In this document: one piece after another, positions 8,812-45,545 of the stretch | Numbering within the stretch: the first letter of the stretch is position 1 | Layout of the letters: every line of letters begins with the position of its first letter | DNA from: Macrostomum lignano | Taxonomy: Eukaryota | Assembly: GCA_002269645.1 (NCBI GenBank) | Contig: NIVC01001180.1 | Coordinates: 248,001-312,000, forward strand | DNA length: 64,000 nucleotides | Direction: 5' to 3' | The notes under the pieces: generated by a model | Databases searched by the model: none | Seen by the model: the letters and a program-made list of their open reading frames with translations, nothing else | What the model was told of the DNA's origin: nothing | Position numbers and translations under genes: made by a program

Positions 8812-9040
8812 GCCAGTTACAGATTCTACAAACTGCCAATTACAGAATCCACAGACTGCCAACTTCAGAATCCACAAACTGCAAATTTCGCATTCGACAT
8901 ACTGCCAATTACAGAATCCACAAACTGCTAATTTTACAATCCACAAACTGCCAATTACAGAATCCACAAACTGCTAATTTTACAATCCACAAACTGCCAA
9001 TGTCGAAACAAAAAACCGCCTATTTAGGAATCCACACACT
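8812..9040. repeat. 23-bp minisatellite (CCACAAACTGCCAATTACAGAAT) in the HEATR6 3' flank/UTR
   Basis: About 9 degenerate tandem copies ending roughly 40 nt beyond the HEATR6 stop codon. Confidence 0.85.
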
Positions 9041-9079
9041 GCCACTATAAATTTAAATTCCTCACTAATCCACCTCCCC

Positions 9080-12000
9080 TCAGTCGTAGGTCTGTCTAAA
9101 GGCCGACGCTAACGAGGTGGCGTGCAGCGCCTGCTCAGCGCGGGCGCCAGCCAGCAGCTCCAGCAGACGTTGGCAGCAGTTGCCGCCGCCACCGCTGCCC
9201 GCAGCAGCACCGGCCGCCGCCGTCAGATTCGCCTCGGCTGCGTCCAACGCTTCGACAGCGAAATCCGGTTCAAGCAGGGCGGCAGCGGCGCCAGTCGAAG
9301 TTGTCGACGTCGACAAAGAGGCGGACGAGCCGCCGCCGCGGCCAAGGAAGAAGGCCTGGCGGACCTGGGCGCCGCTGTCCCAGACCAAAGCGGCCTGCGC
9401 TGTCCACAGCCGGCTAAGCTGACTGGCCAGCAAATCTATCGGCCCGATCTCGCCGCTAGCGTCGTTAGCAACGTTGCTTAGCAAGGGCGACACAGCGTCG
9501 GCATCGCCGGGCGATAACAGAGAGCAGGCTCGCAGCAGCAGCAGGCAGAGCAGGTAGTCCAGCACGGTCTTGTGAGTCTGCTCGCTGAACGGGATGTCCA
9601 TGGAGCGGACGTGGCGGGCGCAGCCAATCACCGAGCCGATCAGGCGAGCCATCGGGTTGCTGGGCTGCTGCTCGGAGGCGGCGGTCAGATCGCCGAATTG
9701 GCGCCGCTCTTGCAGGGTGAGCAGCGCGCAGGCCGCGTGGATTTTAACCTGGCAAAAGTGTTTAAACGGTAGTTTTATAGCAGGGGTCGGTAAAATTTCT
9801 TTTACTTCAAGGGTCAGATAGACGAATATGGCGTATGGATGAGGGCCAGGTGAGAGAGGAGAGGAAAGGAGAGAGAGGAGAGAAGAGAGGAGAGGGGGAG
9901 AGGAGAGATGAGGGGAAAGGGGAGAGGAGAGAAAAGACAAACTTGGGGGAAGGATAGAGACCTGAGCTTGCCGACTCCTGTATTAGAGAGTAAGATGCTA
10001 GATTAATCGCATAGCATTAAAGTGTAGAGATTGAGTACCGGTGCAAAGTCACTTGGGTTCGATTCCACATCAGTTGGCCTAGGGCTTGATGTGCACAGCC
10101 TGACGATGATACCCATGGTCAGGGCCCCAAAACCTAGAGGTCAGGGACCCAGAGGTCAGGGATCCAGGGGTCAGGGACCTAGGGGTCAGGGACCCAGGGG
10201 TCAGGGACCCAGGGGTCAGGAACCTAGGGGTCAGGGCCTAGGGGTCAGGGCCTAGGGGTCAGGGACCCAGGAGTCAGGGACCCAGGAGTCAGGGACCCAG
10301 GGGTCAGGGACTCAGGGGTCAGGGACCCAGGGGTCAGGGACCCAGGGGTCAGGGACCCAGGGGTCAGGGACCCAGGGGTCAGGGACCCAGGGGTCAGGGA
10401 CCCAGGGGTCAGGGACCCAGGGGTCAGGGACCCAGGGGTCAGGGACCCAGGGGTCAGGGACCCAGGGGTCAGGGACCCAGGGGTCAGGGACCCAGGGGTC
10501 AGGGACCCAGGGGTCAGGGACCCAGGGGTCAGGGACCCAGGGGTCAGGGACCTAGGGGTCAGGGCCTAGGGGTCAGGGCCAAGGGGTCAGGGCCTAGGGG
10601 TCAGGGACCCAGGAGTCAGGGACCCAGGAGTCAGGGACCCAGGGGTCAGGGACTCAGGGGTCAGGGACCCAGGGGTCAGGGACCCAGGGGTCAGGGACCC
10701 AGGGGTCAGGGACTTAGGGGTCAGGGACCCAGCGGTAACGGATCCTGGGGTCAGGTGCCCGCCTGGGGTCAGGATTACAGAACTAAGCCTCCCTCACCTT
10801 GAAGTACTTATCGGATTGCAGTGCACCTAGCAGGGCGGAGTGCAGGCACAGAGTCCAAGGCTCTCCAACTGGCAGGCAGCCAAAGGCGCACCGGATAGCC
10901 AGCGAGGCGTTCCACCGGACCCTGGCGCTGGCCGAGTCGGCGCCGCCCGGCGTCACGAGGTTGGCCAGCCCGGTAGCTGCCTGCTCCATGCAGGCCCGCA
11001 GGTGGCCTCTGCCTCCGCTGCCGCTAGCCGCCGATTCCAAATAGTCCGAGCACAGCGCAGCCAGGCAGAACAAATTGCCCAATAGGCGGGCGGCATTTTC
11101 TCGAACTTTTGGCGCATCGGCGCAGAGATTCATGCCGGCTAGGAATAGGCGAACTAGATCGGCCTCGGATAGCAACGGCGGCGACGGCGGATAGCGCGAC
11201 TGATCGGACAGGGCTAGGAGAGCCTCCGAGGCCTGTGGGACGCGGAACCGGGTAGGTAGTTAGGAAGAAAGTACACCAGGTAGATAGGGGGAGAAGGCAC
11301 ACCGGGTAGATGGGGGAGAAAGTACACCCGGTAGATGGGGGAGAAAGTACACCGGATAGATGGGGGGGAGAAAGTACACTGGGTAGATGGGGGGAGAAAG
11401 TACACCGGGTAGATGGGGGGAGAAAGTACACCGGGTAGATGGGGGAGAAAGTACACCGTTAAGATAGGGGAGAAAGTACATCGGGAACATGAATGACAAT
11501 TAGAAAGGGGACAAAAGGGTCACAGCAACGGAAATAATGGCAATAAAGGTAATAACTGCCAACCTGAGCCAGCGACCAGGCGGCCTGGGCGCGCACCACA
11601 AGCGACTCGATGCCGGCGCACAGGTCGGCGAAGCGCCAGACCAGCGCCAGCAGTCTTCGGCCATTATTCTCGAATCGAATTGGGCCAAGAGCAGTCCAGG
11701 CGCCCAGAGCTCGAACAGCGGCGGCTCGGACAGTGTTGAGGCCGTCCTGGCAGAGCGCCAGCAGGGCCTGGAAGGCGTCGCCGAGTAGCTCGGACGGTAG
11801 ATTGGCCGACGAAGCGTCGTCAAGCAGCGCGAGGCATTCGGCAGCGGCGGAGCGGACGCTGTAGTGGGCGGCCGGTTGCAGGCAGGACAGCAGGGCTGGC
11901 AGGAAGGCTGACCAGACAGGGGCGGCAGCCTCCGCGGGCGGCAGCGAGGTCAGCAGAGCGTCGAGAGCGCGGACTGAGGCGGCGCGGACAGCCCGGTTGG

Positions 12001-15000
12001 ACTCGGGCAGCAGGCAGAGCTGCAGAGTAAGGCGGAGCTGCTCAGACACTGGGCTGACAAAGTTCCAGTAGCGGAGCACCAGCCAGCGCAGGGTGGCGAG
12101 GGCCTCCACGCGAACTGCGGTTGGCTCTAGGGCCGCCTGCTGCTGGGACTGCCCGGCTGCTGCTGCCGCTGACCCCGATGGGGTGTCATCATTCTGTGGG
12201 GTTAAGCGATTAGGGCTTGTTATTGACAGACAGACAGACAGACAGAAAGACAGACAGACATACAGACAGACACACACACATACACACAGAGACAGACAGA
12301 CAAACAAATAGACACACACACACACACACAGAGACAGACAGACAAACAAAAAGACACACAGACACACACACACACACACAGACAGACAGACAAACAAATA
12401 GACACACAGACACACACACACACACACACACAGACAGACAGACAAACAAAAAGACACACAGACACACACACACACACACAGACAGACAGACAAACAAATA
12501 GACACACAGACAGACACACAGACGAATAGATCAGCAGCCGACCTGCCAGCCGTCGCCCCTAGGATGCGCCACCCGCAGGCAGTGCTGCACCAGCCAGGAG
12601 GACTCGAACGGCGCAGTTTGCGGTCCCAGCAGAGGCGTGTGAAATCCGGTGAGCATGGGCGAGGCGGCGGGCGAGCGGAGGCAGTCCTGCAGAAGGCAGT
12701 GGGACACCTCGAACGCGGGGCCTTCGAGCGAGGCCAGCTGGCCGAAGCACTGCAGGGCGGCCGATTTCACGTCCGGCGATTCGGACAGGAGAAACGGGGA
12801 GGCCACCTGAGATGACGCCGAAGATTGAAGATTTTAATGAATGGCTGCGAGGGGCATGACAGGAACGTCAATGCACAGCTCCGAAGCTTCAGGCAGGGGA
12901 AGTAGCGGGAATCCCGTCTGAATCCTGACGCCTCAGAGAGAGAAGGCAACGGGAATCCCATTTAAATCCTGAAGCCTCAGGGAGAAGTGGTAACGGGAAT
13001 CCCATCTGAATGCTGAAGCCTCACTGAGAAGAGGTAACGGGAATCCCATCTGAATGCTGAAGCCTCAGTGAGAAGAGGTAACGGGAATCCCATTTAAATC
13101 CTGAAGCCTCAGGGAGAAGTGGTAACGGGAATCCCATCTGAATGCTGAAGCCTCACTGAGAAGAGGTAACGGGAATCCCATCTGAATGCTGAAGCCTCAG
13201 TGAGAAGAGGCAACGGGAATCCCATCTGAATGCTGAAGCCTCAGTGAGAAGAGGCAACGGGAATCCCATCTGAATGCTGAAGCCTCAGTGAGAAGAGGCA
13301 ACGGGAATCACATCTGAATCCTGAAGCCTCAGTGAGAAGAGGCAACGGGAATCCCATCTGAATCTTGAAGCCACAGGCAGGTTGGTCAGCAAGGATCCCG
13401 CTAGTAACTAAATCACGCGACACCGAGTCGGCCTCCCACCTTGAAAATCTTGGTGACGAGGCCCGGGCGCAGTTTCTGGTAGGGCACATTTCCGGCCAGT
13501 TGACCAACGCAGCGCAGCAGCTGGGCCTGAGTTGCCTGGCTCCGCTCGGCTAGCAGAGCCTGCAGAATCTGCCTGTGCATCTCCCGGAGCGAGCCGGCCA
13601 GCCGGGTGGACAGCGGGGTGAAAGCGGTCTTGGGGACGCCGAAATCTTCGGCTAGAAGCAGAAAAGCTTTCGAGCCCTGAAACAGGCTCGCTAATAGGTC
13701 CAATAGGTTGGCGCGAACCTGAAATACAGGCGGTTACTACTTATTAGTAGATGTCACGAAGATTTTGAAGGCCGACTTTTTTAAAGGTAGGTACCTAAGA
13801 AACAAAATTTATGAACTCGACAGTCACGCCTTCTAAAGACGGATTTCTAGTAAAACGAGTCATATATTGCCTAATTTAACAATACAGAATGATTTGGGAC
13901 ACCAGTGGCTGGTTTCTTTACAACAGTTCTTTCGAAAAAGCCGACTATGGCTAACGTAGTAAAATCCCATCCAATGGAATCCCAATCATGGGATTCTCCT
14001 TGGAGAAATCCAATTTGCACCGAAACCCTGGTCAGCAATTAAACTACAAACAATTAAGTCAATTTGCCCCATTACCTCTTAAGCATCACTCCTCTCAGCA
14101 TCATTTCCTCCCAGCATCATTCCCCTCAGCATCATTCCCCCTCAGCATCATTCCCTCTCAGTATTATTCCCTCTCAGCATCATTCACTCTCAGCATCATT
14201 CCCCCGTCAGCATCATTCCCCCCCGTCAGCATCATTCCCCCCCGTCAGCATCATTCCCCCGTCAGCATCATTCCCCCGTCAGCATCATTCCCCCTCAGTA
14301 TCATTCCCCTCAGCATCATTCCCTCTCAGCATCATTCCCCCTCAGTATCATTCCCCTCAGCATCATTCCCCCTCAGTATCATGGCTGGTTTCTTTACAAC
14401 AGTTCTTTCGAAAAAGCCGACTATGGCTAACGTAGTAAAATCCCATCCAATGGAATCCCAATCGTGGGATTCTCCTTGGAGAAATCCAATTTGCACCGAA
14501 ACCCTGGTCAGCAATTAAACTACAAACAATTAAGTCAATTTGCCCCATTACCTCTTAAGCATCACTCCTCCCAGCATCATTCCCCTCAGCATCATTCCCC
14601 CTCAGCATCATTCCCTCTCAGTATCATTCCCTCTCAGTATCATTCCCTCTCAGCATCATTCACTCTCAGCATCATTCCCCCGTCAGCATCATTCCCCCCG
14701 TCAGCATCATTCCCCCGTCAGCATCATTCCCCCGTAGTATCATTCCCCTCAGCATCATTCCCTCTCAGCATCATTCCCCCTCAGTATCATTCCCCTCAGC
14801 ATCATTCCCTCTCAGCATCATTCCCCTCAGCATCATTCCCCCTCAGTATCATTCCCCTCAGCATCATTCCCTCTCAGCATCATTCCCCCTCAGTATCATT
14901 CCCCTCAGCATCATTCCCCCTCAGTATCATTCCCCTCAGCATCATTCCCTCTCAGTATCATTCCCCTCAGCATCATTCCCCTCAGCATCATTCCCCCTCA

Positions 15001-18000
15001 GTATCATTCCCCTCAGCATCATTCCCCCTCAGTATCATTCCCCTCAGCATCATTCCCTCTCAGCATCATTCCCCCTCAGTATCATTCCCCTCAGCATCAT
15101 TCCCTCTCAGCATCATTCCCCCTCAGTATCATTCCCCTCAGCATCATTCCCCCTCAGTATCATTCCCCTCAGCATCATTCCCTCTCAGCATCATTCCCCC
15201 TCAGTATCATTCCCCTCAGCATCATTCCCCCTCAGTATCATTCCCCTCAGCATCATTCCCTCTCAGTATCATTCCCCTCAGCATCATTCCCCTCAGCATC
15301 ATTCCCCCTCAGTATCATTCCCCTCAGCATCATTCCCCCTCAGTATCATTCCCCTCAGCATCATTCCCTCTCAGCATCATTCCCCCTCAGTATCATTCCC
15401 CTCAGCATCATTCCCCTCAGCATCATTCCCCCTCAGCATCATTCCCTCTCAGTATCATTCCCTCTCAGTATCATTCCCTCTCAGCATCATTCACTCTCAG
15501 CATCATTCCCCCGTCAGCATCATTCCCCCCGTCAGCATCATTCCCCCGTCAGCATCATTCCCCCGTAGTATCATTCCCCTCAGCATCATTCCCTCTCAGC
15601 ATCATTCCCCCTCAGTATCATTCCCCTCAGCATCATTCCCTCTCAGCATCATTCCCCTCAGCATCATTCCCCCTCAGTATCATTCCCCTCAGCATCATTC
15701 CCTCTCAGCATCATTCCCCCTCAGTATCATTCCCCTCAGCATCATTCCCCCTCAGTATCATTCCCCTCAGCATCATTCCCTCTCAGTATCATTCCCCTCA
15801 GCATCATTCCCCTCAGCATCATTCCCCCTCAGTATCATTCCCCTCAGCATCATTCCCCCTCAGTATCATTCCCCTCAGCATCATTCCCTCTCAGCATCAT
15901 TCCCCCTCAGTATCATTCCCCTCAGCATCATTCCCTCTCAGCATCATTCCCCCTCAGTATCATTCCCTCAGCATCATTCCCCCTCAGTATCATTCCCCTC
16001 AGCATCATTCCCTCTCAGCATCATTCCCCCTCAGTATCATTCCCCTCAGCATCATTCCCCCTCAGTATCATTCCCCTCAGCATCATTCCCTCTCAGCATC
16101 ATTCACAACGTTACCCTCGAGTTGGGCTCCCGAAGTAGCAGCGCTAGCAGAAACGAGGGCCTTCCGGGATCCGGAAAGAAGGCCAGCCAGTGGCACTGCA
16201 GAGCCCGCTTGTGCAAGGATTCAACCAGTCTTCGAAGACAGGAACCGCTGATGAATCGAACTTTAGCGTCAGCTAGCGAGACAGAGGATGCCGGTTGTTG
16301 GCGCTCTGAAAATTGCGTCAGGTTACAAAAAATTAGGCACCGTCCTAAGTATCCTACTAATAGTAGAAATCAGAAGAAAACTGCAGAGAAAATATTCACC
16401 GTCACGATTAAGCATCAAGTCGGCGAGGTCGGCGTCCCGCAAGTCCAGGCCGCTCAGCCGCTGCTCCAAACTGCCGTTGGCCTCTTCGTCCGAGTCGCCG
16501 CCGTCGCCCCTGGCAACGCAGCGAGCTTTTTTCAGTGGCTTCTTGGATCGGAGACCAGGCACAGTGACGGAGTCGAACTGGTCCAGCTCGGGCTCGTGGG
16601 CGAAAGCGTGCGGACCGGCGCCTGTAGCATCGGCAGAGGCATCGGATGCAGCAGAAGCGGCAGTTGGCGGAGGCAGGCCGTGCCACAGGTAGCGGCGCAG
16701 CTGGTTGAGAAGGCGAGGCAGATCGGCCGGGCGGATTGGAGGCGACCTGAACAATGGGGCGGGTGGCGCGTCACTGGCTGTAGCGATTTACAGGGATTCT
16801 CAGGGTTATCGCGGTGGATTTTCAGATGAGGTTAAGGTCGATTCTCAGGGGCGGTGTAGGGGCGATTCTCAGGGGCGGTGTAGGGGCGATTCTCAGGGGC
16901 GGTGTAGGGGCGATTCTCAGGGGCGGTGTAGGGGCGATTCTCAGTTGTGTAAGGGCGATTCTCAGGGGTGTAAGGGCGATTCTCAGGGGTGTAAGGGCGA
17001 TTCTCAGGGGTGTAAGGGCGATTCTCAGGGGTGTAAGGGCGATTCTCAGGGGTGTAAGGCGATTCTCAGGGGTGAAAGGGCGATTCTCAGGGGTGAAAGG
17101 GTGATTCTCAGGGGTGAAAGGGCGATTATTTGGGGTGGGAGATTAAGAAGCTATTCTCAAGCGGTGAATTAGGCGCGATTCTCAGGGGTGAAAGGGCGAT
17201 TCTCAGGGGTCTAAGGGCGATTCTCAGGGGTGGAATGGCGATTCTCAGGGGTCTAAGGGCGATTCTCAGGGGTCTAAGGGCGATTCTCAGGGGTGGAAGG
17301 GCGATTCTCAGGGGTCTAAGGGCGATTCTCAGGGGTGGAAGGGCGATTCTCAGGGGTGAAAGGGCGATTATTTGGGGTGGGGGATTAAGAAGCTATTCTC
17401 AAGCGGTGAATTAGGGGCAATTCTCAGGATGCGGTGTAGCTGCGATTTCTGCAAACAAAAGTAGCCAACTCACCTGCTTATCAGAAAGGTTAGCAGATGC
17501 AGCAGCAGCTGCAGTACCCGAGCGCTGGGCCTGTCGCTAACCGATTCCAGCAGGGCCAAGCAGCGGGTCAGGAGGGTGGACACCAGGTCGGGCGGCAGGC
17601 AGTCCCGCTGGTCTGTCGGTCTCAGATAGGCCAGATTGGCCAACGCTTGAGCGGCATAGAATTGACAAGCCGACAAATTGTAGTCGTCGCCTTCGCCGGA
17701 CAGCGTCTCGCCTTCGTCTGGGGACGTCGGCCAACGGGACAGCCGGTCAATCAGCCGGCGAATGGTGTCCCGCAGCAGGCCCTGGTGCTGGGCAAATTGG
17801 CCAACATTCAGGCACAGAGCGGCCAGCAGTTGCAGATTGGCGCCGGCCGAGTTCAGATCCTGGCTACTGTTGGACTCAGAGCTGGCCAGCCGGGACAGCA
17901 GATGCCGGACAGTGGCCAAGGTGAGCGGCTCGGCCGGACTGATCTTGTGGCTGATCAGCGCGCCGGCTAGTAGGGCCTGGGATTATTATTTATTATTTTC

Positions 18001-19273
18001 GATACATGTCGGCAATGGCCTCATTAACACGGGCGTTGATAGCCTAAGTTAAGGACTCTACTGTTGTCATCAACTAACATTATTGATGTCCCTGCAAACA
18101 ACTTTTCTATAAAAACCATCTCTTTAGCATTGCCCCTAGGCCACCCTTAGCAACACCCTCAAACCATCCTTAGCAACGCCCTCAAACCATCCTTAGCAAC
18201 ACCCTCAAACCACCCTTAGCAACACCCTCAAACCATCCTTAGCAACGCCCTCAAACCACCCTTAGCAACACCCTCAAACCATCCTTAGCAACACCCTCAA
18301 ACCACCCTTAGCAACACCCTCTAAACATCCTAGCAACGCCCTCAAACCATTCTTAGCAACGCTCTCAACCATTGAAACCACCCTTAGCAACGCCCTGAAA
18401 CCATTCTTAGCAACGCTCTCAACCATTGAAACCACCCTTAGCAACGCCTTAAAACCACTCTTAGCACCGTCCTCAATCCACTTAGATTTACCTGGCTTGC
18501 ATTGGGCTTCCCTTTCTTCTGTATTTCTATCGCATTCCCAGCGCCTACCTGCAGCGGCCCCACCGGGGCCTCATCGCCGGGCTGCAGTCGCGGCAGCAAC
18601 TGCAGCAGAATGGCCACGGCGTCCGGGCTGAGCACCCGCTGCGCCGTCTCGCTGTCCGGCCCCTGCTCGGCCACGGACCGCAGCTCGGCCAGAGCCTGCG
18701 CGCAGTTGGCTCGCCATAAACTTCGGACAGTGGCCGGCGCTCTGTCCGGATCCGGAGGCGAAGTGAGCAGCAACACCAGCTTCTGCACGCACGGGTCCAG
18801 CCGCTGCAAATCAAATGTGTCCAGGCTGGCTGCCGCAGTGGACGGTGGCATCGAAGAGCTGCCGCCGCCGGTGGCCATGTCGCCATTGGCCGATTGGAAG
18901 CCGGGACGCCTACACAACATTAAATGGATAAACTTGCACTTAAATGTACATAGAATCTACAATTTAATGTACATACAATGTACACATACAATGTACATTA
19001 TAGTGAATGTGTACTACAATTTACATACGATACACGCTCGATTGTACTCTACCTCGTTCCACCCTCGCCGGCACCTCTTGGAGGTCGCCGACTGCCTCCA
19101 CCGCCGCCGCGCCACTTGTCTGGCGACGGTGCGCTACATCCGCTTCCAGTTGGCGCCGCAGCAGCACCCGCGCCTGGTCGGCGCCAATTGCTGACGGAAT
19201 CAGCCTGGCTAACCACTCGCTGTTGGCGCGGATTTGGCCCGCCGCTGGCGCCTGCTGACGATTTCGACTCCAT
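9080..19273 (-). CDS. HEATR6: HEAT repeat-containing protein 6 (about 1299 aa, 10 coding exons)
   Basis: Exons joined at GT-AG sites, all in frame (3900 nt total): 19273-19053, 18909-18549, 17976-17474, 16746-16400, 16305-16115, 13718-13440, 12806-12543, 12193-11564, 11232-10798, 9748-9080. HEATR6-like motifs: AKVRF...HWLAFFPD...[34 protein letters not shown]; AAWSLAQ; [13 protein letters not shown]; [10 protein letters not shown]; [12 protein letters not shown]. Confidence 0.9.
10000..10116 (+). mobile_element. Possible degenerate tRNA-derived SINE head inside HEATR6 intron 9
   Basis: Pol III B-box-like GGTTCGATTCC at 10056-10066, directly upstream of the 15-bp array. A-box not convincing. 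Confidence 0.3.
10117..10775. repeat. 15-bp minisatellite (GGGGTCAGGGACCCA) in HEATR6 intron 9
   Basis: About 43 near-identical copies. A GA-rich microsatellite at about 9850-9950 lies in the same intron (9749-10797). Confidence 0.95.
11272..11480. repeat. 25-27-bp minisatellite (GGGGGAGAAAGTACACCGGGTAGAT) in HEATR6 intron 8
   Basis: About 8 tandem copies inside intron 11233-11563. Confidence 0.9.
12225..12522. repeat. Compound (GACA)n/(CA)n microsatellite with higher-order unit in HEATR6 intron 7
   Basis: Fills most of intron 12194-12542. Confidence 0.95.
12905..13368. repeat. 44-bp minisatellite (GGGAATCCCATCTGAATGCTGAAGCCTCAGTGAGAAGAGGCAAC) in HEATR6 intron 6
   Basis: About 10 tandem copies inside intron 12807-13439. 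Confidence 0.95.
13906..16105. repeat. 15-16-bp minisatellite (CAGCATCATTCCCC(C)T) with higher-order duplications in HEATR6 intron 5
   Basis: The array runs about 14075-16105. A block starting TGGCTGGTTTCTTTACAAC occurs at 13906 and 14382 (period 476 bp). A variant signature CACTCTCAGC...CCCGTAG recurs at about 14661 and 15492. Confidence 0.95.
16800..17440. repeat. 21-bp minisatellite (GGGCGATTCTCAGGGGTGTAA and variants) in HEATR6 intron 3
   Basis: About 27 copies in sub-blocks of variants inside intron 16747-17473. Confidence 0.95.
18135..18470. repeat. 23-bp minisatellite (CTTAGCAACACCCTCAAACCACC) in HEATR6 intron 2
   Basis: About 14 copies inside intron 17977-18548. Confidence 0.9.
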
Positions 19274-19303
19274 GAATGCGTTTGGGACGCTTGGGCTTGG
19301 AGA

Positions 19304-19320
19304 CTGGCGTTCAAAATAAT
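19304..19320 (-). promoter_or_regulatory. Splice acceptor 30 nt upstream of the HEATR6 ATG (5'UTR intron or SL trans-splice site)
   Basis: Sense sequence ATTATTTTGAACGCCAG|TCT; AG at 19305-19304, ATG at 19273. Confidence 0.45.
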
Positions 19321-19323
19321 CGC

Positions 19324-19645
19324 CTCTATGCTGCACTGGGAATGACCTATATGCTGCACTGGGAATGGCCTCTATGCTGCACTGGGAATGGCCTCTATGC
19401 TGCACTGGGAATGGCCTCTATGCTGCACTGGGAATGGCCTCTATGCTGCACTGGGAATGGCCTCTATGCTGCACTGGGAATGACCTCTATGCTGCACTGG
19501 GAATGGCCTCTATGCTGCACTGGGAATGGCCTCAATGCTGCACTGGGAATGGCCTCTATGCTGCACTGGGAATGGCCTCTATGCTGCACTGGGAATGGCC
19601 TCTATGCTGCACTGGGAATGGCCTCTATGCTGCACTGGGAATGAC
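19324..19645. repeat. 23-bp minisatellite (GCCTCTATGCTGCACTGGGAATG) upstream of the HEATR6 first acceptor
   Basis: About 14 near-identical copies. Confidence 0.95.
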
Positions 19646-20021
19646 ATCTATATTTCGCTAAGAAATAAAATGCAGCAAACAGATTTATAAAAAAATGGTG
19701 CGCATCGTTATTTATTATTGTCACGTTATGTATAGCGTATTAAATTATTCAACGGCATTAAATGACTTTTGAAATACATTGTTTTAAATTATTTAAAAAA
19801 ACAAAAAGAAACAGTATTATGCGCTATGAAGAGAAAAATTGGTTAAGCAAACGAACATTAAACTGACGAAAGAAATGCAGGTAGGTTTAAATTGTTGTAG
19901 AACACGCTTGCTAGCGTACAATTACTAAAGAAATATATATATGTTTTCAAACCAAATGAGCCTAGCAACTGGCAATTAAATCCTTAGTGGGCTAATCAAG
20001 CGATTGAAGACCAACCTTAAC

Positions 20022-30729: not shown

Positions 30730-30748
30730 TTTCTGTCCTTATTTTCAG
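30730..30748 (+). promoter_or_regulatory. Splice acceptor 10 nt upstream of the PPAN ATG (candidate SL trans-splice site)
   Basis: TTTCTGTCCTTATTTTCAG|CCTCATTTGCATG; AG at 30747-30748. Confidence 0.6.
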
Positions 30749-30758
30749 CCTCATTTGC

Positions 30759-34273: not shown

Positions 34274-34549
34274 CCGAGTTATTTAGTTTTCTAAGAAAAA
34301 GAATTCTCCATCTTCAATATGTCAATAACGCAAATTTCTTCTGCTTAGTAGAAATTACGTAATTAATAAAGCTAACCAAATTGATTGCGCAATGCTCTGG
34401 CATTTCTTCCCCAAGCCCCGATGTTGACCCCAAGCGAGCATTGGCGGCGATGTGCTAATTGCATTTTTGAATTGCTGTTATCTTGTGGTTAATCTTTATT
34501 TGCTCAAATTCTATGCCATAGTCATGTAACATTCCAAACTCTTACCCAT

Positions 34550-35352
34550 TACTTACACTCTCTTCCCCATCCCCTGCACTCTCTTTCTCATCCCTACACT
34601 CTCTTACCCATCCCCTGCACTCTCTTCCCCATCCCCTGCACTCTCTTCTTCACCCCCTACACTCTCTTCCCCATCCCCTGTACTCTCTTCCCCATCCCCT
34701 GCACTCTCTTCTTCACCCCCTACACTCTCTTCCCCATCCCCTGTACTCTCTTCCCCATCCCCTGCACTCTCTTCTTCACCCCCTACACTCTCTTCCCCAT
34801 CCCCTGTACTCTCTTCCCCATCCCCTGTACTCTCTTCCCCATCCCCTACACTCTCTTCTTCACCCCCTACACTCTTCCCCATCCCCTGTACTCTCTTCCC
34901 CATCCCCTGTACTCTCTTCCCCATCCCCTACACTCTCTTCTTCACCCCCTACACTCTTCCCCATCCCCTGTACTCTCTTCCCCATCCCCTACACTCTCTT
35001 CTTCACCCCCTACACTCTTCCCCATCCCCTGTACTCTCTTCCCCATCCCCTACACTCTCTTCTTCACCCCCTACACTCTCTTCCCCATCCCCTGTACTCT
35101 CTTCCCCATCCCCTACACTCTCTTCCTCATCCCCTACACTCTCTTCTTCACCCCCTACACTCTCTTCCCCATCCCCTACACTCTCTTCTTCACCCCCTAC
35201 ACTCTCTTCCCCATCCCCTACACTCTCTTCCTCACCCCCTACACTCTCTTCCCCATCCCCTGTACTCTCTTCCCCATCCCCTACACTCTCTTCTTCACCC
35301 CCTACACTCTCTTCCCCATCCCCTGTACTCTCTTCCCCATCCCCTGTACTCT
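34550..35352. repeat. 19-21-bp pyrimidine-rich minisatellite (CTCTCTTCCCCATCCCCTGTA / CTCTCTTCTTCACCCCCTACA) between PPAN and the claudin-like gene
   Basis: About 38 copies with alternating variants, ending about 55 nt before the acceptor at 35405-35406. Confidence 0.95.
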
Positions 35353-35408
35353 CATCATCGTCAAACGTTTTACCTAACAGTTTTATTGGCATTCGGTCAA
35401 TTTCAGCA

Positions 35409-36125: not shown

Positions 36126-36418
36126 GCTGTTGTGGCGGCTTTGACATTCGTGTTTGTCAATTTGTCTGATAAAAAATCACATTGGGGAGTAAGTAATAGG
36201 TGTATTGGGGAGTAAGATTACAACAATTTAATCTACAGATCTACAGGCAGAAGCCACTCCTATGTCTATGGCATCACCGAATTAAATGGTGATCAAATGA
36301 AATCAAACGGAAAATCAAACGTAAATACTACATCCGATAGTATCTGCTGGCCTTCATCGGTTTAAGGCTCCTTCGTAACTTCTTTATTGTGTTTAGAAAG
36401 AGATAATACTTGTAGAAT

Positions 36419-37487
36419 AACTAGATGATGTCACTCGCAAAAAATGCGCTCACTTACATGTACTTCTTCAGTAGCACAATTAGCGTTTTTAAGCAAAAAT
36501 GTATTCATTTTACAAGATTTTTAAGTTTTTGAAAACGAAACAATCGCCTCTGGCCTTCTACAGGCAGAAATTTACATCTTCACCATGTTTGAAGCTGCAC
36601 CCAAATCCAGTGCGTGTGCTGAGCTAGATTATGGCCTGCCTCCCCCAGGGCTAAGTTTCGTCCGTCTAACTTTGAACTCTTTCTTAATGCTCTCTCATTG
36701 GCTGGCCTAGATAGGGCGGCCTGCCCCCCCTCCCAGGGCTGAGTTTCGTCCGTCTAACATTAACCTCTTTCTTACTGCTCTCTCATTGGCTGAGCTAGAT
36801 TAGGCCTGCCTCCCCCAGGGCTGAGTTTCGTCCGTCTTGCGTCCCGTAATGCTTGTTTACTCTTAACCCCATATGCTCCTAGGGATCACAGATACTAGAA
36901 TAACTAGATGTGTCACTCGCAAAAAATGCGTTTCTCTACTCTTTTTTCAGTAGCAAAATTAGCGTTTTTTTGCCTTTATAAAAGTGAAATTCAAATTTAT
37001 CCACTTTTAAACGAAATTTTAAGTTTTTAAGGCTGCAAAAGTCTGTGCCTAATTTCTACAAACAGGCTAATTAAATAAGCATGTCTGCTGAGTTCTACCG
37101 GTTCAAAAATAAACGAATTTAAGACTTAAGACTGTAGAAAACTATAAAAATGTAAAATTCCCAAATTCAGTGCTTGGCATAGAGAGCAAGAGAGAATTAG
37201 TGCTGGCGCCCAGACATCTCTCTACTGCTCTCTCATTGGCTGAGCTAGATTGGGCCTGCCCCCCCCCAGGCTGAGTTTCGTCCGTATTGCGTTCATTTGT
37301 GTACATTGAGTTAACAAATGCTTGTTCATTCTTAACCACCTATGCTCTTGAGGCCGCAAGCCCTGAGGAAGGAAAGGAATTTTACCTTCTACATCAAATT
37401 TGAATTACATTAGCGCAGACAACTACTGAAAAAATAGTAGAGGCTCTACTTTTTTCACAATTTTAATTGCGAGTGACAAATCTAGTT
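36419..37487. mobile_element. Inverted-repeat-bounded non-autonomous element plus a partial upstream duplicate
   Basis: AACTAGATGTGTCACTCGCAA at 36902-36922 versus the reverse complement of 37467-37487 (20/21 identical). The same left end occurs at 36419. An internal module of about 60 bp (GCTAGATT.GGCCTGCC.CCCCCAGGGCT.AGTTTCGTCCGT) is present four times. Confidence 0.6.
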
Positions 37488-38571: not shown

Positions 38572-39262
38572 GTCTCAGATCCCCAGTTGCTGGGCCAGCC
38601 TCCCAGATCCCTAGTTGCTGGGCCAGCTTCCTAGATCCTCAGTTGCTAGGCCAGCCTCCCAGATCATCAGTTACTGGGCCAGCCTCCCAGATCCCCAGTT
38701 GCTGGGCCAGCCTCCCAGATCCTCAGTTGCTAGGCCAGCCTCCCAGATCCTCAGTTGCTAGGCCAGCCTCCCAGATCTCCAGTTGCTGGGCCAGCCTCCC
38801 AGATCCCCAGTTGCTGGGCCAGCCTCCCAGATCCTCAGTTACTGGGCCAGCCTCCCAGATCCTCAGTTACTGGGCCAGCCTCCCAGATCCTCAGTTGCTA
38901 GGCCAGCCTCCCAGATCCTCAGTTGCTGGGCCAGTCTCCCAGATCCTCAGTTGCTAGGCCAGCCTCCCAGATCCTCAGTTGCTGGGCCAGCCTCCCAGAT
39001 CCTCAGTTGCTAGGCCAGCCTCTCAGATCCCCAGTTGCTGGGCCAGTCTTCCAGATCACCAGTTGCTGGGCCAGCCTCTCAGATCCCCAGTTGCTGGGCC
39101 AGTCTCCCAGATCACCAGTGCTGGGCCAGCCTCCCAGATCCTCAGTTCTTGTGCCAGCCTCCCAGATCCTCAGTTCCTGTGCCAGCCTCCCAGATCCTCA
39201 GTTCCTGTGCCAGCCTCCCAGATCCTCAGTTGCTGGCCAGCCTCCCAGATCCTCAGTTGCTG
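38572..39262. repeat. 28-bp minisatellite (CAGTTGCTGGGCCAGCCTCCCAGATCCT) upstream of the CEBPZ ATG
   Basis: About 24 copies ending about 70 nt before the ATG at 39332. Confidence 0.95.
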
Positions 39263-39331
39263 GGCCACCAATGCTCACTTCACGTAGCCACCAGCAAGTC
39301 CAATTGAATACAAAACACATGCTCGCACTCC

Positions 39332-42300
39332 ATGACGGCACCCGGCGGCAACAAGAAAAAATCGACAAAGGCCGCTCCGGCCAAGCCGTTGGCAGCCTCC
39401 ACGGCAGGTGACGAAGCGGCAGCGCCAGCCGACGCGGCGGCACGCTGGTACCGCGACCCGCTGACTAAGGCGGCGCTGAAGCCCAGCGAGCCGTCGGAGC
39501 CGGGCGGCAAGGCGGAGTTCGCCCGCAAGAAGGGCGGCGAAGCGCTGGCCCAGCTGGCCAAGGCCTTCCGCTCCGACATGCAGACGTCGCGCAGCTTCGC
39601 CGATCGGTTCGCCATCCGGGTGCTGGAGTCCGGCACCCAGGCCGACCGGGTCGGCGTCATGACCGGCTTGGTGCGCGACCACCCGTTGGAGAGCCTTGCT
39701 CACCTGGAGGCCCTGGTTGCTATGGTGACGCCTAAAGCTAAACGCGACGCTCTCACCGTGCTGGATGCAGTCAAGTCTCTGTTTCTCGAGCACCTGCTGC
39801 CGCCAGGCAGGCGCCTCGTGCCACTCGACCGGCGCCCGTTTACCCGTCTGGCGCCGGTTCTGGCGCGCAAAGGCCGAGACGCGGCGCGTCACGTCCGCGC
39901 TCTCTGGTACTTTGAAGAGCGGCTGGGCCAGCTGCTGCAGCAGTTTCTGGACAGACTGGACGGCCTGCTGCGCGACCCGGTCGATGCGGCTCGACTACGG
40001 GCGGTGGCCGCCGTCGCTGAGCTGGCCGTCGGGCATCGGGACTGCCGGAGCCGCGCGATGGCCAGTCTGGCTAACAAATTGGGCGATCCGAGCCGACGGG
40101 TCTGCGGCGCCGCGCTGCACAGGCTAAGGCTGCTGGCGGTTAAGCGGCCGGAGATGAAGGTGGGGCGCCGGCGGGATTTGCAGGGTAGGGGAGGAACTGG
40201 CAGGGTAGGGGGCGGAACTGGCAGGGTAGGGGGCGGAACTGGCAGGGTATAGGGCGGAACTGGCAGGGTATAGGGCGGAACTGGCAGGGTATGGGGCGGA
40301 ACTGGCAGGGTAGGGGGCGGAACTGGCAGGGTAGGGGCGGAACTGGCAGGGTATGGGGCGGAACTGGCAGGGTAGGGGGCGGAACTGGCAGGGTATAGGG
40401 CGGAACTGGCAGGGTAGGGGCGGAACTGGCAGGGTAGGGGACGGAACTGGCAGGGTAGGGGGCGGAACTGGCAGGGTATAGGGCGGAACTGGCAGGGTAG
40501 GGGGCGGAACTGGCAGGGTAGGGGGCGGAACTGGCAGGGTAGGGGCGGAACTGGCAGGGTAGGGGCGGAACTGGCAGGGTAGGGGGCGGAACTGGCAGGG
40601 TAGGGGGCGGAACTGGCCTAATGATCGAAACTGTGGGGATTTGAGATCTAAGTGTCAGAAGAGGATCAGAACATGAACTCATTGCCTACCAATCGCCCGC
40701 AGGCCGCTCTAGTTGACGAAATCGAACGGCTGCTGTTTCGCGGCAACGCTGACTCTGCCGCTGCTCGCGGCGTCAACTCCGGCGTGGCTCGGACGCATCG
40801 GTACGCCGTCTGCCTGCTGTGCCAGCTGCCGCTGACCGCCGCCGACACCAACGCTGGCGGCGTGGCCGGCCGCCTGGCCGGGATTTACCTGGCCTTCTTT
40901 AAAGCGGCCGCCAAACGCCAGGAGGTGGCCGGCAGACTGTTTGCCGGCTTGCTGACCGGACTGCATCGAGCTCTGCCCTTCTGCGGCCCGGACAAACTGG
41001 CCGAACTGTCCGAGCACGCCAGGTTGCTGTTTGGCCTCGTCCATTTGGCCGGATTTAATGTCGGAGTCCAGTGCCTGCTGGTGCTGTTCCAGCTAGTGCA
41101 GCGGGATCCTAGTTTGAGCGACAGGTTCTACAGGGCGCTGTACCAGCGGCTGCTGGACATTGGGCCAGTGGCTAAGCGGGCCATGCTGATGCACCTGCTG
41201 TACCGCAGTCTGAGCTGGGACAGCCGGCTGCCGAGGGTGCGCGCGTTCGTTAGGCGGATCCTGCAGGTGAGATGGGCCTCGATCTAAAACTGATACGCAG
41301 CTTAAAGTACATCATTATTTAGTGCTTATCTACTGTTGATAAGCGGCCTTCAATTTTAATCTATCCCATGCTTTATGCTTATCTACTGTTGATAAGCGGC
41401 TTTCAATTTTAATCTATCCCATGCTTTATGCTTATCTACTGTTGATAATCGGCCTTCAATTCTAATCTATCCCATGCTTATCTATTGTGATAATCGGCCT
41501 TCAATTCTAATCTGTCCCATGCTTATCTATTGTGATAATCGGCCTTCAATTCTAATCTGCCCCATGCTTATCTATTGTGATAATCGGCCTTCAATTCTAA
41601 TCTGTCCCATGCTTATCTATTGTGATAATCGGCCTTCAATTCTAATCTGTCCCATGCTTATCTATTGTGATAATCGGCCTTCAATTCTAATCTGTCCCAT
41701 GCTTATCTATTGTGATAATCGGCCTTCAATTCTAATCTGTCCCATGCTTATCTATTGTGATAATCGGCCTTCAATTCTAATCTGTCCCATGCTTATCTAT
41801 TGTGATAATCGGCCTTCAATTCTAATCTGTCCCATGCTTATCTATTGTGATAATCGGCCTTCAATTCTAATCTGTCCCATGCTTATCTATTGTGATAATC
41901 GGCCTTCAATTCTAATCTATCCCATGCTTATCTATTGTGATAATCGGCCTTCAATTCTAATCTATCCCATGCTTATCTATTGTGATAATAGGCCTTCATT
42001 TCTAATCTATCCCATGCTTATCTATTGTGATAATCGGCCTTCAATTCTAATCTATCCCATGCTTATCTATTGTGATAATCGGCCTTCAATTCTAATCTGT
42101 CCCATGCTTATCTATTGTGATAATAGGCCTTCATTTCTAATCTATCCCATGCTTATCTATTGTGATAATCGGCCTTCAATTTTAATCTATCCCATGCTTA
42201 TCTATTGTGATAATCGGCCTTCAATTCTAATCTGTCCCATGCTTATCTATTGTGATAATAGGCCTTCATTTCTAATCTATCCCATGCTTATCTATTGTGA

Positions 42301-44621
42301 TAATCGGCCTTCAATTCCTTAGAGAAATTATGCATTTGACACATGTTTCCACTCATACTACTTTTCACAACTCGCGCACACTACTGCCGCCCCCATCAGG
42401 TGGCCACTATGCAAGACTCTGCATTCGCTTGCGCCTCCCTGCTGCTCATTGGGCAGCTGGAAGGCGACCGACCCGGCCTGGTCACCGACATGCTCAGCGG
42501 CGTCGCCGCCCCGGCCCCCGCCGACGCCACCACCGGCACCCCTATGGCAGCGGCGGCGGCGGCGGCGGCGGCCAGCTACGACCCGCTCAGCCGGCAGCCG
42601 GAATTCTGCGGCGCCGAGGCCGAGCCGCTGTGGGAGCTGCCGCACTACCTGTCCCATTGTCATCCGTCTGTGCGCCTGTTCGCCTCCCAGATTATTGCAA
42701 AGTGAGCCACTGTAGTCATTCACTTGTATGCAGTGTAATTGCAATAGTTCTAGAGTCGGCATTGTTTCTTCACCTCAAGCTAAATCAATAAAACTAGCGC
42801 CTTTTGTGCTGAATCACTTCCAGGAGTTTACCTGAATCATTTCCGGTTTCACTGCCTGAATCATTTCTAGTTTCACTGCCTGAATCATTTCTGGTTTCAC
42901 TGCCTGAATCATTTCCGGTTTCACTGCCTGAATCATTTCTAGTTTCACTGCCTGAATCATTTCTAGTTTCACTGCCTGAATCATTTCTAGTTTCACTGCC
43001 TGAATCATTTCTGGTTTCACTGCCTGAATCATTTCTAGTTTCACTGCCTGAATCATTTCTAGTTTCACTGCCTGAATCATTTCTAGTTTCACTGCCTGAA
43101 TCATTTCTAGTTTCACTGCCTGAATCATTTCCGGTTTCACTGCCTGAATCATTTCTAGTTTCACTGCCTGAATCATTTCTAGTTTTACTGCCTGAATCAT
43201 TTCTGGTTTCACTGCCTGAATCATTTCCGGTTTCACTGCCTGAATCATTTCTAGTTTCACTGCCTGAATCATTTCTAGTTTCACTGCCTGAATCATTTCT
43301 AGTTTCACTGCCTGAATCATTTCTAGTTTTACTGCCTGAATCATTTCTGGTTTCACTGCCTGAATCATTTCCGGTTTCACTGCCTGAATCATTTCTGGTT
43401 TCACTGCCTGAATCATTTCCGGTTTCACTGCCTGAATCATTTCTAGTTTTACTGCCTGAATCATTTCTGGTTTCACTGCCTGAATCATTTCCGGTTTCAC
43501 TGCCTGAATCATTTCTAGTTTCACTGCCTGAATCATTTCTAGTTTCACTGCCTGAATCATTTCTAGTTTCACTGCCTGAATCATTTCTGGTTTCACTGCC
43601 TGAATCATTTCTAGTTTGCCTGAATCATTCCCATTGTACAAGCCCTCACCCACACCGCACCGCAGGCAGCCAATCGTGTACGACGGCGATCCCCTGGCGG
43701 ATTTCTCCCTGGCCAAATTCCTCGAGCGATTCTCCTTCAAGAATCCCAAAAAAGCGCCGCCGCCAGGCGACCCGTCGGCCAGGTTTCGTCCCAGGCGCCG
43801 GTCGTCGTCCGCTGCTGGCGCCAAATTGGCGCCAAGCCGCGAAGAGCTGGCGCGCATACCGGACGAGGCCAGCGTGGCGCCGACGGAGCGGCACCTGCAC
43901 CGCTACCTGCGCATCGTCGGCGAGGGCCGCCGGCCACCGGACGATTTCGACTCGGACGCCAGCTCGGTTGGCGACGAGGAATTCGACGACTTCCTGGAGG
44001 ACTTCGAGCAGGTGAGCGGCAGATTTTCTAACACAATAGAGCTGGCTAACGGGGGTTCACTGAGGTCCGGAGCTCGATTCTAGATGTATGTAAACCAATT
44101 GAATTATTATGGCCAATCTTGAATATCTCGCTCACGCGTAGGGCCTGTCCGGCGACGCGGAAGCGGCCGACTTTGCCGACGATTTCGGCCGAGCCGACGC
44201 TGAACGGCGAAAAAAGTCGGCCAAACAATCGACCAAACAGAAGGCGGCTGGACAGGACGGCGATGATAGCGTCGACGATGATGTCGGTGAAAGCGACGGC
44301 GAGGACGACATCGACATGCTTGACGATGAGGAGCTGTCCGATCTGGGCATGTCCTCTGACGGCGAAGATTACGAAGTCAGCGGCGGCAACCGCGAGGAAA
44401 ATGGCGACGTCGACATCGATGCCGAAGGCTTCGCTGAAATGCTGGAAGGCGACTCGGCCGATCAGGCGAAGGCGGCCAAGCGGGCCCACTGGGACCGGGT
44501 TCGGTCCGACCGCATCGACAGGCGCGCCGGCCCGCCAAAGAGTCGAAAGCGTCGGGAAACTGGCGGCGGCGGCGGCGGCGGCGGCAGTCGAGCAAAAAAG
44601 CGGGCACGAACTGGGCGGTGA
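39332..44621 (+). CDS. CEBPZ: CCAAT/enhancer-binding protein zeta / Noc1 / Mak21, CBF-domain 60S biogenesis factor (839 aa, 5 exons)
   Basis: Exons 39332-40159, 40703-41266, 42400-42701, 43666-44011 and 44142-44621 join in frame. Motifs SGTQADRV, LANKLGDP, RFYRALYQRLL, RVRAFVRRILQV, EPLWEL...HCHPSV.LFA, YDGDPLADFSLAKFLERFSFKNPK, and an acidic tail. AATAAA at 44766-44771. Confidence 0.95.
40178..40617. repeat. 20-21-bp G-rich minisatellite (GGCGGAACTGGCAGGGTAGGG) in CEBPZ intron 1
   Basis: About 21 copies inside intron 40160-40702. Confidence 0.95.
41325..42318. repeat. 45-bp minisatellite (GATAATCGGCCTTCAATTCTAATCTGTCCCATGCTTATCTATTGT) in CEBPZ intron 2
   Basis: About 22 copies inside intron 41267-42399, with divergent, longer units at the 5' edge. 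Confidence 0.96.
42813..43630. repeat. 24-bp minisatellite (GTTTCACTGCCTGAATCATTTCTA) in CEBPZ intron 3
   Basis: About 34 copies inside intron 42702-43665. Confidence 0.96.
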
Positions 44622-45239
44622 TTTCTTAGAAATTCTATTGAGATCAGTTATGCCATTCAGCTGGGCAGGTCTATTCGCATTTTCAACCTAATCCTTGAAT
44701 AGGAAGTCGTCATTTATTGTGCGTTTAGAAGTCGTGCTTGCTTGAAATTTGTGTTATAAAAAAATAATAAACAAGTTGCATTGACTTATTATAGCGAATT
44801 GGATAGCACTGCGGTGCCGTCGTAGTCCTTTCCAATCCGCTAAGGTTTTCAATCTGTCAATTAAAGACAAAGAAATGTCCTTCTGGCTTCTTAATAATTA
44901 TTTTATAATTTTTATTTTGCAAGCAGAAATTATGCGTCAATAGGATCCTATAAGAGTTACAACTAAAAATACTATATGTGATTTTTATTTATAGTCAGCC
45001 CCAGCTGCAGCAACAACCTTTCATCGAGTTGCAAGGATGAAAAAGATAATGATAATGACCGGGGAGAAATGTCTGGCCTGTAAGCTGAATGCAGCAATCG
45101 GGGGTGGGGCGAGGGGGCGGCCGCCCCCCCCCCCCATATTTTCATCCCCCAGAATCTGCGTCCCGATTTGGGTCTTTAACCCCCAAAATCCGCTCCCTTT
45201 GGGCGTTGGATCTCCACCCCTGGAATCCGCCTCCCCGCC

Positions 45240-45545
45240 CGCCCCCCTCCTCTAATTTGGCTTTTCACCCCCTGAATCCGCCCCCCCCCCTAATTTAGCT
45301 CTTCACCCACGGAATCCGCCCCTCCCCCCTAATTTAGCTCTTCACCCCCGGAATCCGCCCCCCCCCCTAATTTAGCTCTTCACCCCCGGAATCCGCCCCC
45401 CTAATTTAGCTCTTCACCCCCGGAATCCGCCCCCCTAATTTAGCTCTTCACCCCCGGAATCCGCCCCCCTAATTTAGCTCTTCACCCCCGGAATCCGCCC
45501 CCCCTTAATTTGGCTCTTCACCCCCTGGAATCCGCCCCCCACTTT
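45240..45545. repeat. 33-36-bp minisatellite (CCGGAATCCGCCCCCCTAATTTAGCTCTTCACCC) downstream of CEBPZ
   Basis: About 8-9 copies with a variable C-run. Confidence 0.9.

Follow-up and report, generated by a model that had tools for sequence, protein, structure and literature searches.

Why should nearly every intron in a cluster of ordinary housekeeping genes be filled by a minisatellite of its own? This question is raised by a stretch of 64,000 nucleotides (the window) from Macrostomum lignano, a free-living flatworm: positions 248,001 to 312,000 of contig NIVC01001180.1 (assembly GCA_002269645.1), which carry the genes HEATR6, DNAJC9, PPAN and CEBPZ together with a claudin-like gene. M. lignano uses spliced-leader trans-splicing and about 7% of its transcripts are polycistronic precursors; its assembly contains 15% simple and tandem repeats and 21% long terminal repeat elements, and the mean intron length is 1.1-1.4 kb (PMC5730564). 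The repeat richness of the genome is already published, and what sets this case apart is the degree and the organisation: near-saturated short introns with a different unit in nearly each of them, and arrays inside and transposons outside the transcription units. An earlier note on the window had described this arrangement and suggested that short introns were each independently inflated by local amplification coupled to transcription or splicing, possibly with reinsertion of rolling-circle or lariat-derived copies, or that long introns were selected for. We confirm that the array-filled introns are real, and find that the arrays are classical hypervariable minisatellites (variable number tandem repeats, VNTRs), in which locus and unit are fixed while the copy number turns over fast.

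Gene models were built from open reading frames, GT-AG sites and a homeologous HEATR6 protein, and the spliced models of HEATR6 (PAA71225.1, 1298 amino acids), PPAN (PAA71227.1, 466 amino acids) and CEBPZ (PAA71229.1, 838 amino acids) are identical to the annotated products, as is the model of the claudin-like protein (238 amino acids). The DNAJC9 model also shows 100% identity to PAA71226.1 across its length. The boundaries of all 16 introns are thus the same as in the transcript-based annotation. Tandem Repeats Finder (TRF) identified about 19 substantial arrays, defined as at least 100 bp and at least 3 copies, in the whole window, all but one of them inside 8807-45568. With these models and TRF the original count was reproduced: a tandem array makes up most of the intron in 13 of the 16 introns of HEATR6, DNAJC9, PPAN and CEBPZ, and arrays account for 9897 of 12864 bp of intron DNA (76.9%). 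Each of the three same-strand spacers between coding sequences also carries an array (1841 of 5722 bp, 32%). Coding sequence contains 0 bp of array, and the other intergenic DNA 1050 of 35961 bp (2.9%), of which 540 bp lie no more than 1 kb away from the stop codons of HEATR6 and CEBPZ; without the first kb past these two terminal stop codons the intergenic share is 1.5%. Gene bodies, spacers and 1-kb tails, which constitute 20% of the array-subtracted non-coding DNA, hold 18 of the 19 arrays (binomial P = 3.7e-12, or P = 2.9e-7 when the arrays are left in). The limitation of arrays to gene bodies and same-strand spacers holds in the three genomic copies of the gene block and in the two unrelated loci described below.

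The array units are 15-45 bp long and present in 8-128 copies with matches of 81-97%, and higher-order periods of 46, 69, 125 and 135 were found by TRF. Every unit length listed in the earlier note (15, 16, 19, 21, 21, 23, 24, 25, 29, 42, 44 and 45 bp and a GACA/CA compound) was recovered, and the sizes given there for the three array-free introns (94, 130 and 143 nt) were exactly right. Subtraction of the array leaves 50-432 nt of intron, with at most 190 nt in 9 of the 13 introns; the earlier note had given about 50-170 nt for most introns. As described before, the arrays start near the donor, after a unique flank of 10-129 nt (260 nt in one intron), and stop short of the AG, with 31-164 nt of unique DNA on the acceptor side (363-390 nt in two introns). 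The longest intron measures 2396 nt. The individual introns and arrays are as follows.

8807-9044, minus strand: 23-mer array of 10.4 copies, starting 36 nt past the HEATR6 stop codon (9080).
9749-10797, minus strand: HEATR6 intron 8, 1049 nt, with a 15-mer array at 10139-10755 (41.5 copies) and a GA-rich tract at 9852-9959.
11233-11563, minus strand: HEATR6 intron 7, 331 nt, with a 25-mer array at 11266-11485 (8.6 copies).
12194-12542, minus strand: HEATR6 intron 6, 349 nt, with a GACA/CA compound array at 12225-12523 and 50 nt of non-array DNA.
12807-13439, minus strand: HEATR6 intron 5, 633 nt, with a 44-mer array at 12906-13376.
13719-16114, minus strand: HEATR6 intron 4, 2396 nt, with a 16-mer array at 14082-16104 (128 copies), 10 nt from the donor.
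16306-16399, minus strand: HEATR6 intron 3, 94 nt, array-free.
16747-17473, minus strand: HEATR6 intron 2, 727 nt, with a 21/24-mer array at 16833-17369.
17977-18548, minus strand: HEATR6 intron 1, 572 nt, with a 23-mer array and variants at 18141-18482.
18910-19052, minus strand: HEATR6 intron 0, 143 nt, array-free.
19318-19651, minus strand: 23-mer array (14.5 copies) in the same-strand spacer from DNAJC9 to HEATR6; it stops 45 nt short of the HEATR6 ATG.
21162-22838, minus strand: DNAJC9 intron, 1677 nt, with a 42-mer array at 21225-22815 (37.9 copies).
31407-32353, plus strand: PPAN intron 1, 947 nt, with a 29-mer array at 31449-32141 and a related 35-mer at 32142-32246.
32699-33874, plus strand: PPAN intron 2, 1176 nt, with a 19-mer array at 32959-33772.
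34539-35353, plus strand: 21-mer array in the PPAN-to-claudin spacer, past the PPAN AATAAA and ending about 50 nt before a TTTCAG acceptor that adjoins the claudin-like ATG.
38576-39267, plus strand: 28-mer array of 24.8 copies in the spacer that separates the claudin-like gene from CEBPZ; it stops 65 nt short of the CEBPZ ATG.
40160-40702, plus strand: CEBPZ intron 1, 543 nt, with a 21-mer array at 40180-40617 (21 copies).
41267-42399, plus strand: CEBPZ intron 2, 1133 nt, with a 45-mer array at 41323-42317.
42702-43665, plus strand: CEBPZ intron 3, 964 nt, with a 24-mer array at 42831-43617.
44012-44141, plus strand: CEBPZ intron 4, 130 nt, array-free.
45239-45568, plus strand: 34-mer array, 0.6 kb past the CEBPZ stop codon and about 0.45 kb past its AATAAA (44766).

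The two arrays announced for the 3' flanks were thus found after HEATR6 (23-mer) and CEBPZ (34-mer), and so were the three arrays in front of start codons, which end 45-65 nt short of the ATG. The array at 8807-9044 probably lies inside the HEATR6 3' untranslated region, because the first canonical poly(A) signal comes only at 7947. Several of the arrays in same-strand spacers lie 3' of canonical poly(A) signals and stop just short of strong acceptor motifs near the next ATG, so that the favoured territory of the arrays is the zone transcribed by RNA polymerase II (Pol II), comprising introns, outron-like spacers and read-through tails, and not the mature mRNA. An obvious TTTCAG acceptor beside the ATG is present only for PPAN and the claudin-like gene, and the starts of the coding sequences of HEATR6, CEBPZ and DNAJC9 are annotated as partial. 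The claudin-like gene and CEBPZ have the transcript-cluster identifier Mlig016617 in common, which hints that they are co-transcribed.

The most informative comparison came from the assembly itself, where the block of five genes (CEBPZ, claudin-like, PPAN, DNAJC9 and HEATR6) is present in three copies, the window being copy A. The exons of copies A, B and C are 95.5-100% identical, mostly above 98.5%, and each array of the window is found at the same site and with the same unit in copies B and C, with copy numbers that differ up to 8-fold. The DNAJC9 42-mer is present 37.9, 20.6 and 13.9 times in A, B and C, the 23-mer before the HEATR6 ATG 14.5, 35 and 110 times, the 21-mer of CEBPZ intron 1 in 21, 4 and 9 copies and the 45-mer of CEBPZ intron 2 in 20, 3.8 and 12 copies. 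In copy C the 23-mer after the HEATR6 stop codon has 19.4 copies against 10.4 in the window, and the 15-mer of HEATR6 intron 8 has 57.5 against 41.5; in copy B the array of HEATR6 intron 6 consists of about 163 GTCT units. The composition of the arrays changes as well, as seen from a C/T unit variant with ratios of 10:1, 10:20 and 22:73 across the three copies, and from HEATR6 intron 2, where the mix of 21-nt and 24-nt units is unlike between the copies. The largest difference, 17-fold, was seen outside the block, where one array measures 254 bp in one genomic copy (L011 14481-14734) and 4356 bp in another (L012 14671-19026).

Head-to-tail units of 10-100 bp, copy-number polymorphism at a fixed locus and interspersed unit variants with higher-order structure are among the properties by which VNTRs are recognised, and these were found here. 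CEBPZ intron 1 is 543, approximately 190 and approximately 294 nt long in A, B and C, which argues against selection for length; together with the 8- to 17-fold variation of other arrays this contradicts the proposal that long introns were selected for. Independent inflation of each intron, as put forward in the earlier note, is not supported either, since all the arrays are older than the split of the three copies, and since families are shared in the PPAN pair and the 28-mer (see below).

The divergence between the block copies is itself a mosaic. A and B are 99.9% identical 3' of CEBPZ (45622-53033), A and C about 99% identical in window 1-8079, and the intergenic DNA between PPAN and DNAJC9 is only about 95% identical between copies, which points to exchange between the copies, be they homeologs or haplotypes of the DV1 line. 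Copy B carries interstitial telomere-like repeats (ACCCTA/CTAACC; L002 8956-9042 and 9326-9375) in a stretch of about 1.2 kb just upstream of DNAJC9 that has no counterpart there in the window.

The beginning of such an array was caught in HEATR6 intron 5, where copy C alone has an extra 42-mer array with 10 copies at 99% identity (NIVC01000018.1, joined L003+L004 coordinates 25053-25476). The 42 nt corresponding to its unit (window about 13375-13416) are single-copy in the window and in copy B, begin 23 nt past the donor and directly adjoin the older 44-mer array, and a GTG is present at the start of the 42-nt unit and again just after it. Unique intron DNA was here duplicated head to tail on the spot; this fits slippage or microhomology-mediated template switching, and a mobile intermediate is unneeded. 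The idea that short introns were enlarged by local amplification is upheld by this birth, by the lack of terminal inverted repeats flanking the intron arrays and by units that, within the window, are private except for one pair. Reinsertion of rolling-circle or lariat-derived copies becomes unnecessary when a newborn array sits head-to-tail on its own source with GTG microhomology. Arrays of different units lie side by side in three places (29-mer/35-mer, 44-mer/42-mer, and 27-mer/24-mer in L010), and such unlike neighbours suggest that an array makes the DNA next to it unstable.

Pairwise comparison of 20 units revealed two clear relationships only and no shared core motif, and in the window no 16-mer of any unit was found outside its own array save for one pair at PPAN. 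Here exon 3 is flanked on both sides by one unit family, the 19-mer at 32959-33772 and the 21-mer CTCTTCCCCATCCCCTACA at 34539-35353; the flanks of the two arrays are unrelated, and the arrangement is kept in all three genomic copies, suggesting that one array can seed another about 0.8 kb away. Terminal inverted repeats around the intron arrays were absent, and inverted alignment of flank against flank was no better than with shuffled sequences for all 13 introns.

The sample was extended from the window locus to two unrelated regions reached through claudin-like paralogs. Among approximately 43 arrays in three unrelated regions, sharing is limited to the 28-mer, GACA and a partial match of CCCCATCCCCTA. 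The 28-mer family of the window (38576-39267) recurs beside both distant claudin-like paralogs, with a consensus identical at 27 of 28 positions and the same orientation to the gene: at L008 12131-12552, 1.4 kb 3' of the paralog, and at L011 11115-11548, within an intron of the paralog. In the window and in L008 the array lies 1.4-2.4 kb downstream of the claudin-like gene and ends approximately 65 nt before the start of the next gene. The claudin-like proteins are 50-71% identical, the coding sequences of the window and L008 genes about 74%, and the flanks of the 28-mer arrays unrelated, so the unit is more conserved than the genes it adjoins. By sequence comparison the 28-mer is not a derivative of the claudin coding sequence, and Rfam gave no match in any part of the window, the 28-mer included. 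Neutral descent cannot explain this recurrence, which may reflect constraint, exchange of sequence from locus to locus or a dispersed family tied to claudin-like genes. The earlier statement that the units are essentially all different therefore stands for most units of the window, and fails for the PPAN pair, which is one family, and for the 28-mer, which recurs at other loci.

The restriction of arrays to gene bodies and same-strand spacers was seen in all three block copies, and the two unrelated regions resemble the window. In L008 (region 2) arrays occupy 36% of the gene ranges, 31% of the same-strand spacers and, counting those of at least 75% match, 1.4% of the upstream 10 kb, and in L011 (region 3) 36% of the gene ranges, 55% of the same-strand spacers and 11% of the divergent region. 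At L011 20310-22009, an 8-mer array of 78 copies (TATCTATG) fills the first intron of a gene that is missing from the annotation. The arrays that do occur in intergenic DNA differ in kind, being either inverted pairs that look transposon-borne or degenerate CT/AG tracts. The inverted pairs include a 29-mer pair in L002/L003 (L002 1894-2058 and 3960-4246) and, downstream of CEBPZ in copy C only, two inverted arrays of 151-bp period (L006 19014-19804 and 20107-20746) which form a foldback-like insertion of about 2.5 kb. We could not confirm the placement of a CT tract of the window (51038-51547) within a miniature inverted-repeat transposable element (MITE).

The array-free intergenic DNA carries remnants of Crypton-like recombinase, reverse transcriptase and RNase H, and copy-specific insertions of 1-9 kb were found in intergenic DNA only, with no transposon in any intron. 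Most of the array-free intergenic DNA aligns at 95-99.9% between the block copies, and is thus at least as old as these copies and not simply newer.

What process could produce this distribution? The arrays are born locally, expand and contract rapidly, are limited at splice signals and do not depend on the sequence of their units. They stay out of about 10-20 nt at the donor and at least 30 nt at the acceptor, presumably because the splice signals are under purifying selection. We consider it fairly probable, taking the statement as a whole, that these are ordinary VNTRs which have saturated the non-coding DNA of transcription units through a mutational regime combined with purging of transposons. 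An array starts with the head-to-tail duplication, in place, of a short piece of unique intron DNA by replication slippage or microhomology-mediated template switching; units are then gained and lost quickly by slippage or unequal exchange, with site and unit kept and copy number drifting freely. Existing arrays, judging from adjacency, would destabilise their flanks so that new arrays form beside old ones until the intron is full. Confinement to introns, same-strand spacers and the first kb past the last gene may be due to a mutational regime of the region, set by open, transcribed chromatin in germline and stem cells that divide (transcription-replication conflict, break repair), and if transposon insertions are purged from transcribed DNA, tandem duplication would be left as the sole route of growth there. 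No particular length would be required of the arrays, and their sequence would in general serve no specific function. The causal part, i.e. the transcribed-chromatin regime together with the removal of transposons, is offered tentatively, and we would not be surprised to see it fail. A bolder version appears doubtful to us though possible: that tandem duplication is tied to Pol II, that arrays beget arrays until all free transcribed non-coding DNA (introns, outrons, intercistronic spacers, read-through tails) is converted to private minisatellites while untranscribed, transposon-rich DNA is spared, and that a few families, the 28-mer among them, have been taken into service as elements under sequence constraint.

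Several results weigh against the preferred explanation. Coupling to transcription or splicing, as proposed in the earlier note, has support from position, with no strand, polarity or hairpin signature found, and the same positional support is what the transcription or open-chromatin step draws upon: a G-rich sense strand is seen in just 5 of 18 arrays, with a weak pyrimidine bias (13 of 18), the homogeneity of units shows no polarity along transcription (8 of 17), and no hairpin or G-quadruplex property is common to the arrays, hairpin potential being present in 3 of 17. The evidence comes from three loci and not from the genome. The annotation is incomplete, as with the potassium-channel-like gene at L011 20310-22009, which is uncalled, and three large arrays in L010 (1-5717) adjoin a scaffold gap, in DNA of unknown status. 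A single birth event was seen, which would fall in a transcription unit by chance with P = 0.2. Finally, the 28-mer, kept at 27 of 28 positions beside three paralogs with coding sequences about 74% identical, misfits a picture of neutral, private and locally born arrays. Among specific candidates, an R-loop or G-quadruplex signature as a general feature was rejected because sense G-rich arrays number 5 of 18, and hairpin-driven slippage because 3 of 17 arrays qualify. Regional GC-biased gene conversion gave no signal (GC, guanine plus cytosine, is 44% in intron remainders and 43% in intergenic DNA); only third codon positions are GC-rich (68-78%).

The main rival dispenses with transcription and supposes that duplications arise everywhere equally and build up only where their position between the exons and signals of essential genes shields them from large deletions and transposon insertions, intergenic turnover being too fast for them. 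Such differential persistence would account for introns without transposons next to intergenic DNA crowded with the remains of Crypton, non-LTR reverse transcriptase and RNase H sequences, for copy-specific insertions confined to intergenic DNA, and for the lack of a transcription signature in the array sequences. However, most of the array-free intergenic DNA is common to all three copies, and as many-fold changes and one birth have occurred since the copies split, old intergenic segments should hold small young arrays; only transposon-borne inverted pairs and low-complexity tracts were found in them, which makes this rival unlikely in our judgement. We regard as improbable the idea that meiotic recombination hot spots lie in gene bodies and that unequal exchange makes and expands the arrays, as at human minisatellites. 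Hypervariability, reshuffling of unit variants and higher-order periods are indeed products of unequal exchange, and the mosaic copies, with stretches of 99.9% next to about 95%, indicate that exchange occurs; yet the regional GC enrichment that GC-biased gene conversion would produce is not seen in intron remainders relative to intergenic DNA, and the divergent promoter region is array-free. In species without PRDM9 recombination hot spots lie in promoter regions.

The arrays could also be functional, as intron-length spacers, as enhancers of splicing or trans-splicing, or as arrays of protein-binding sites. This would suit the 28-mer, which keeps its sequence and orientation beside three claudin-like paralogs, and the three pre-ATG arrays with their similar distances to the start codon, and it has a parallel in the C. 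elegans repeat CeRep25B, which is 75% intronic and linked to alternative splicing (PMC4039745). But the units are unrelated from intron to intron, copy number and intron length are unconstrained (about 190-543 nt in one intron, 254-4356 bp in one array), three short introns work array-free, and a strong acceptor-like TTTCAG repeated 38 times in one array leaves annotated splicing normal, so that we think a functional role very improbable. Hardly any credence is given to arrays carried in by mobile elements (MITE, foldback or Helitron-borne) or created by misassembly. Transposon-borne arrays do exist here, namely the inverted 29-mer pairs in L002 and the 151-bp-period arrays at L006 19014-20746, but intron arrays lack terminal inverted repeats, have private units and in one case were born from their own flank. 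The same arrays were moreover assembled independently, with unlike copy numbers, on three contigs of a PacBio-based assembly, which speaks against an artefact.

Having weighed these alternatives, we return to the preferred reading of the arrays as ordinary VNTRs and compare them with known systems. Human hypervariable minisatellites resemble them in their head-to-tail units of 15-45 bp, internal variants, higher-order periods and many-fold changes in copy number at a fixed locus. The Macrostomum arrays differ in being neither scattered nor subtelomeric, since 13 of 16 introns and all the same-strand spacers are filled with them and they amount to 77% of the intron DNA, in being nearly absent from the neighbouring transposon-rich DNA, and in having no shared core motif. 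Tandem repeats are said to have been found over-represented in introns in the 1998 C. elegans genome paper. In amphioxus, the "mirages" of the Adh3 and globin genes consist of several intronic minisatellites per gene with units of 10-160 bp (PMC3087553), and like the arrays described here they are unstable in length between haplotypes, leave splicing undisturbed despite AG and GT motifs in the units, and are apparently of local origin. Mirages, however, duplicate exon-intron boundaries, whereas the Macrostomum arrays contain no exon sequence and come no closer than 10 nt to donors and 31 nt to acceptors. CeRep25B is an intronic minisatellite in another trans-splicing animal, and its remaining copies may lie in outrons (PMC4039745), but it is a single dispersed family of 24 bp with clusters on chromosomes III and II, whereas nearly every Macrostomum array has its own unit and only the 28-mer acts like a dispersed family. 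The Y-linked fertility genes of Drosophila have gigantic introns composed mainly of tandem repeats that are transcribed through (PMC6508621); these introns are megabase-sized, are made up of a few simple satellites and belong to a handful of genes on a heterochromatic chromosome, while the array introns of Macrostomum measure 0.3-2.4 kb, lie in ordinary housekeeping genes and have complex private units. We found no description of the present intronic-array organisation in the open literature, a check that did not extend to Wasik et al. 2015 (PNAS).

If the organisation is genome-wide, intron size in M. lignano would be set by local tandem duplication and not by transposons, and the genome would consist of two compartments that grow differently, with arrays inside transcription units and transposons outside. 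A duplication process tied to Pol II, if true, would account for much of the 15% tandem-repeat share and for the kilobase-scale introns. With transgenesis, inbred lines and germline and stem-cell expression sets available, the worm would, again if the pattern is general, be a tractable system for asking where tandem repeats arise. In practice, the arrays account for the difficulty of assembling the genome and give introns a length that is specific to the allele; they provide hypervariable markers by the thousand, and they complicate the design of primers, guide RNAs and knock-ins in this regeneration model.

A few further observations concern individual genes and elements of the window. The TTTCAG in the DNAJC9 42-mer unit is a consensus-like acceptor, and the annotated splice is the distal site. 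In the UniProt entry A0A1I8FRY8, from the older ML2 assembly, the last DNAJC9 exon is fused to HEATR6 (window 20805-21161, 19132-19269 and HEATR6 exons), which comes either from read-through or polycistronic transcription or from a faulty prediction. One same-strand spacer holds a transposon-like element: a dispersed element of about 0.6 kb at 36887-37487, 3' of the claudin-like gene, is 88% identical to L008 9176-9748, which lies 5' of the paralog, and it adjoins an 88-bp repeat at 36618-36837. The intergenic remnants comprise a Crypton-like tyrosine recombinase at 46396-47785 on the minus strand (DUF3504 and Phage_integrase, with a QRICH1 domain upstream), for whose open reading frame (46396-47118) a protein search returned no M. 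lignano protein of that type in the protein collection, and pieces of a non-LTR reverse transcriptase and of RNase H at 58280-60026 on the plus strand. At the window end, an open reading frame of 531 amino acids at 62397-63992 on the minus strand, with no Pfam match, is possibly an unannotated lineage-specific gene.

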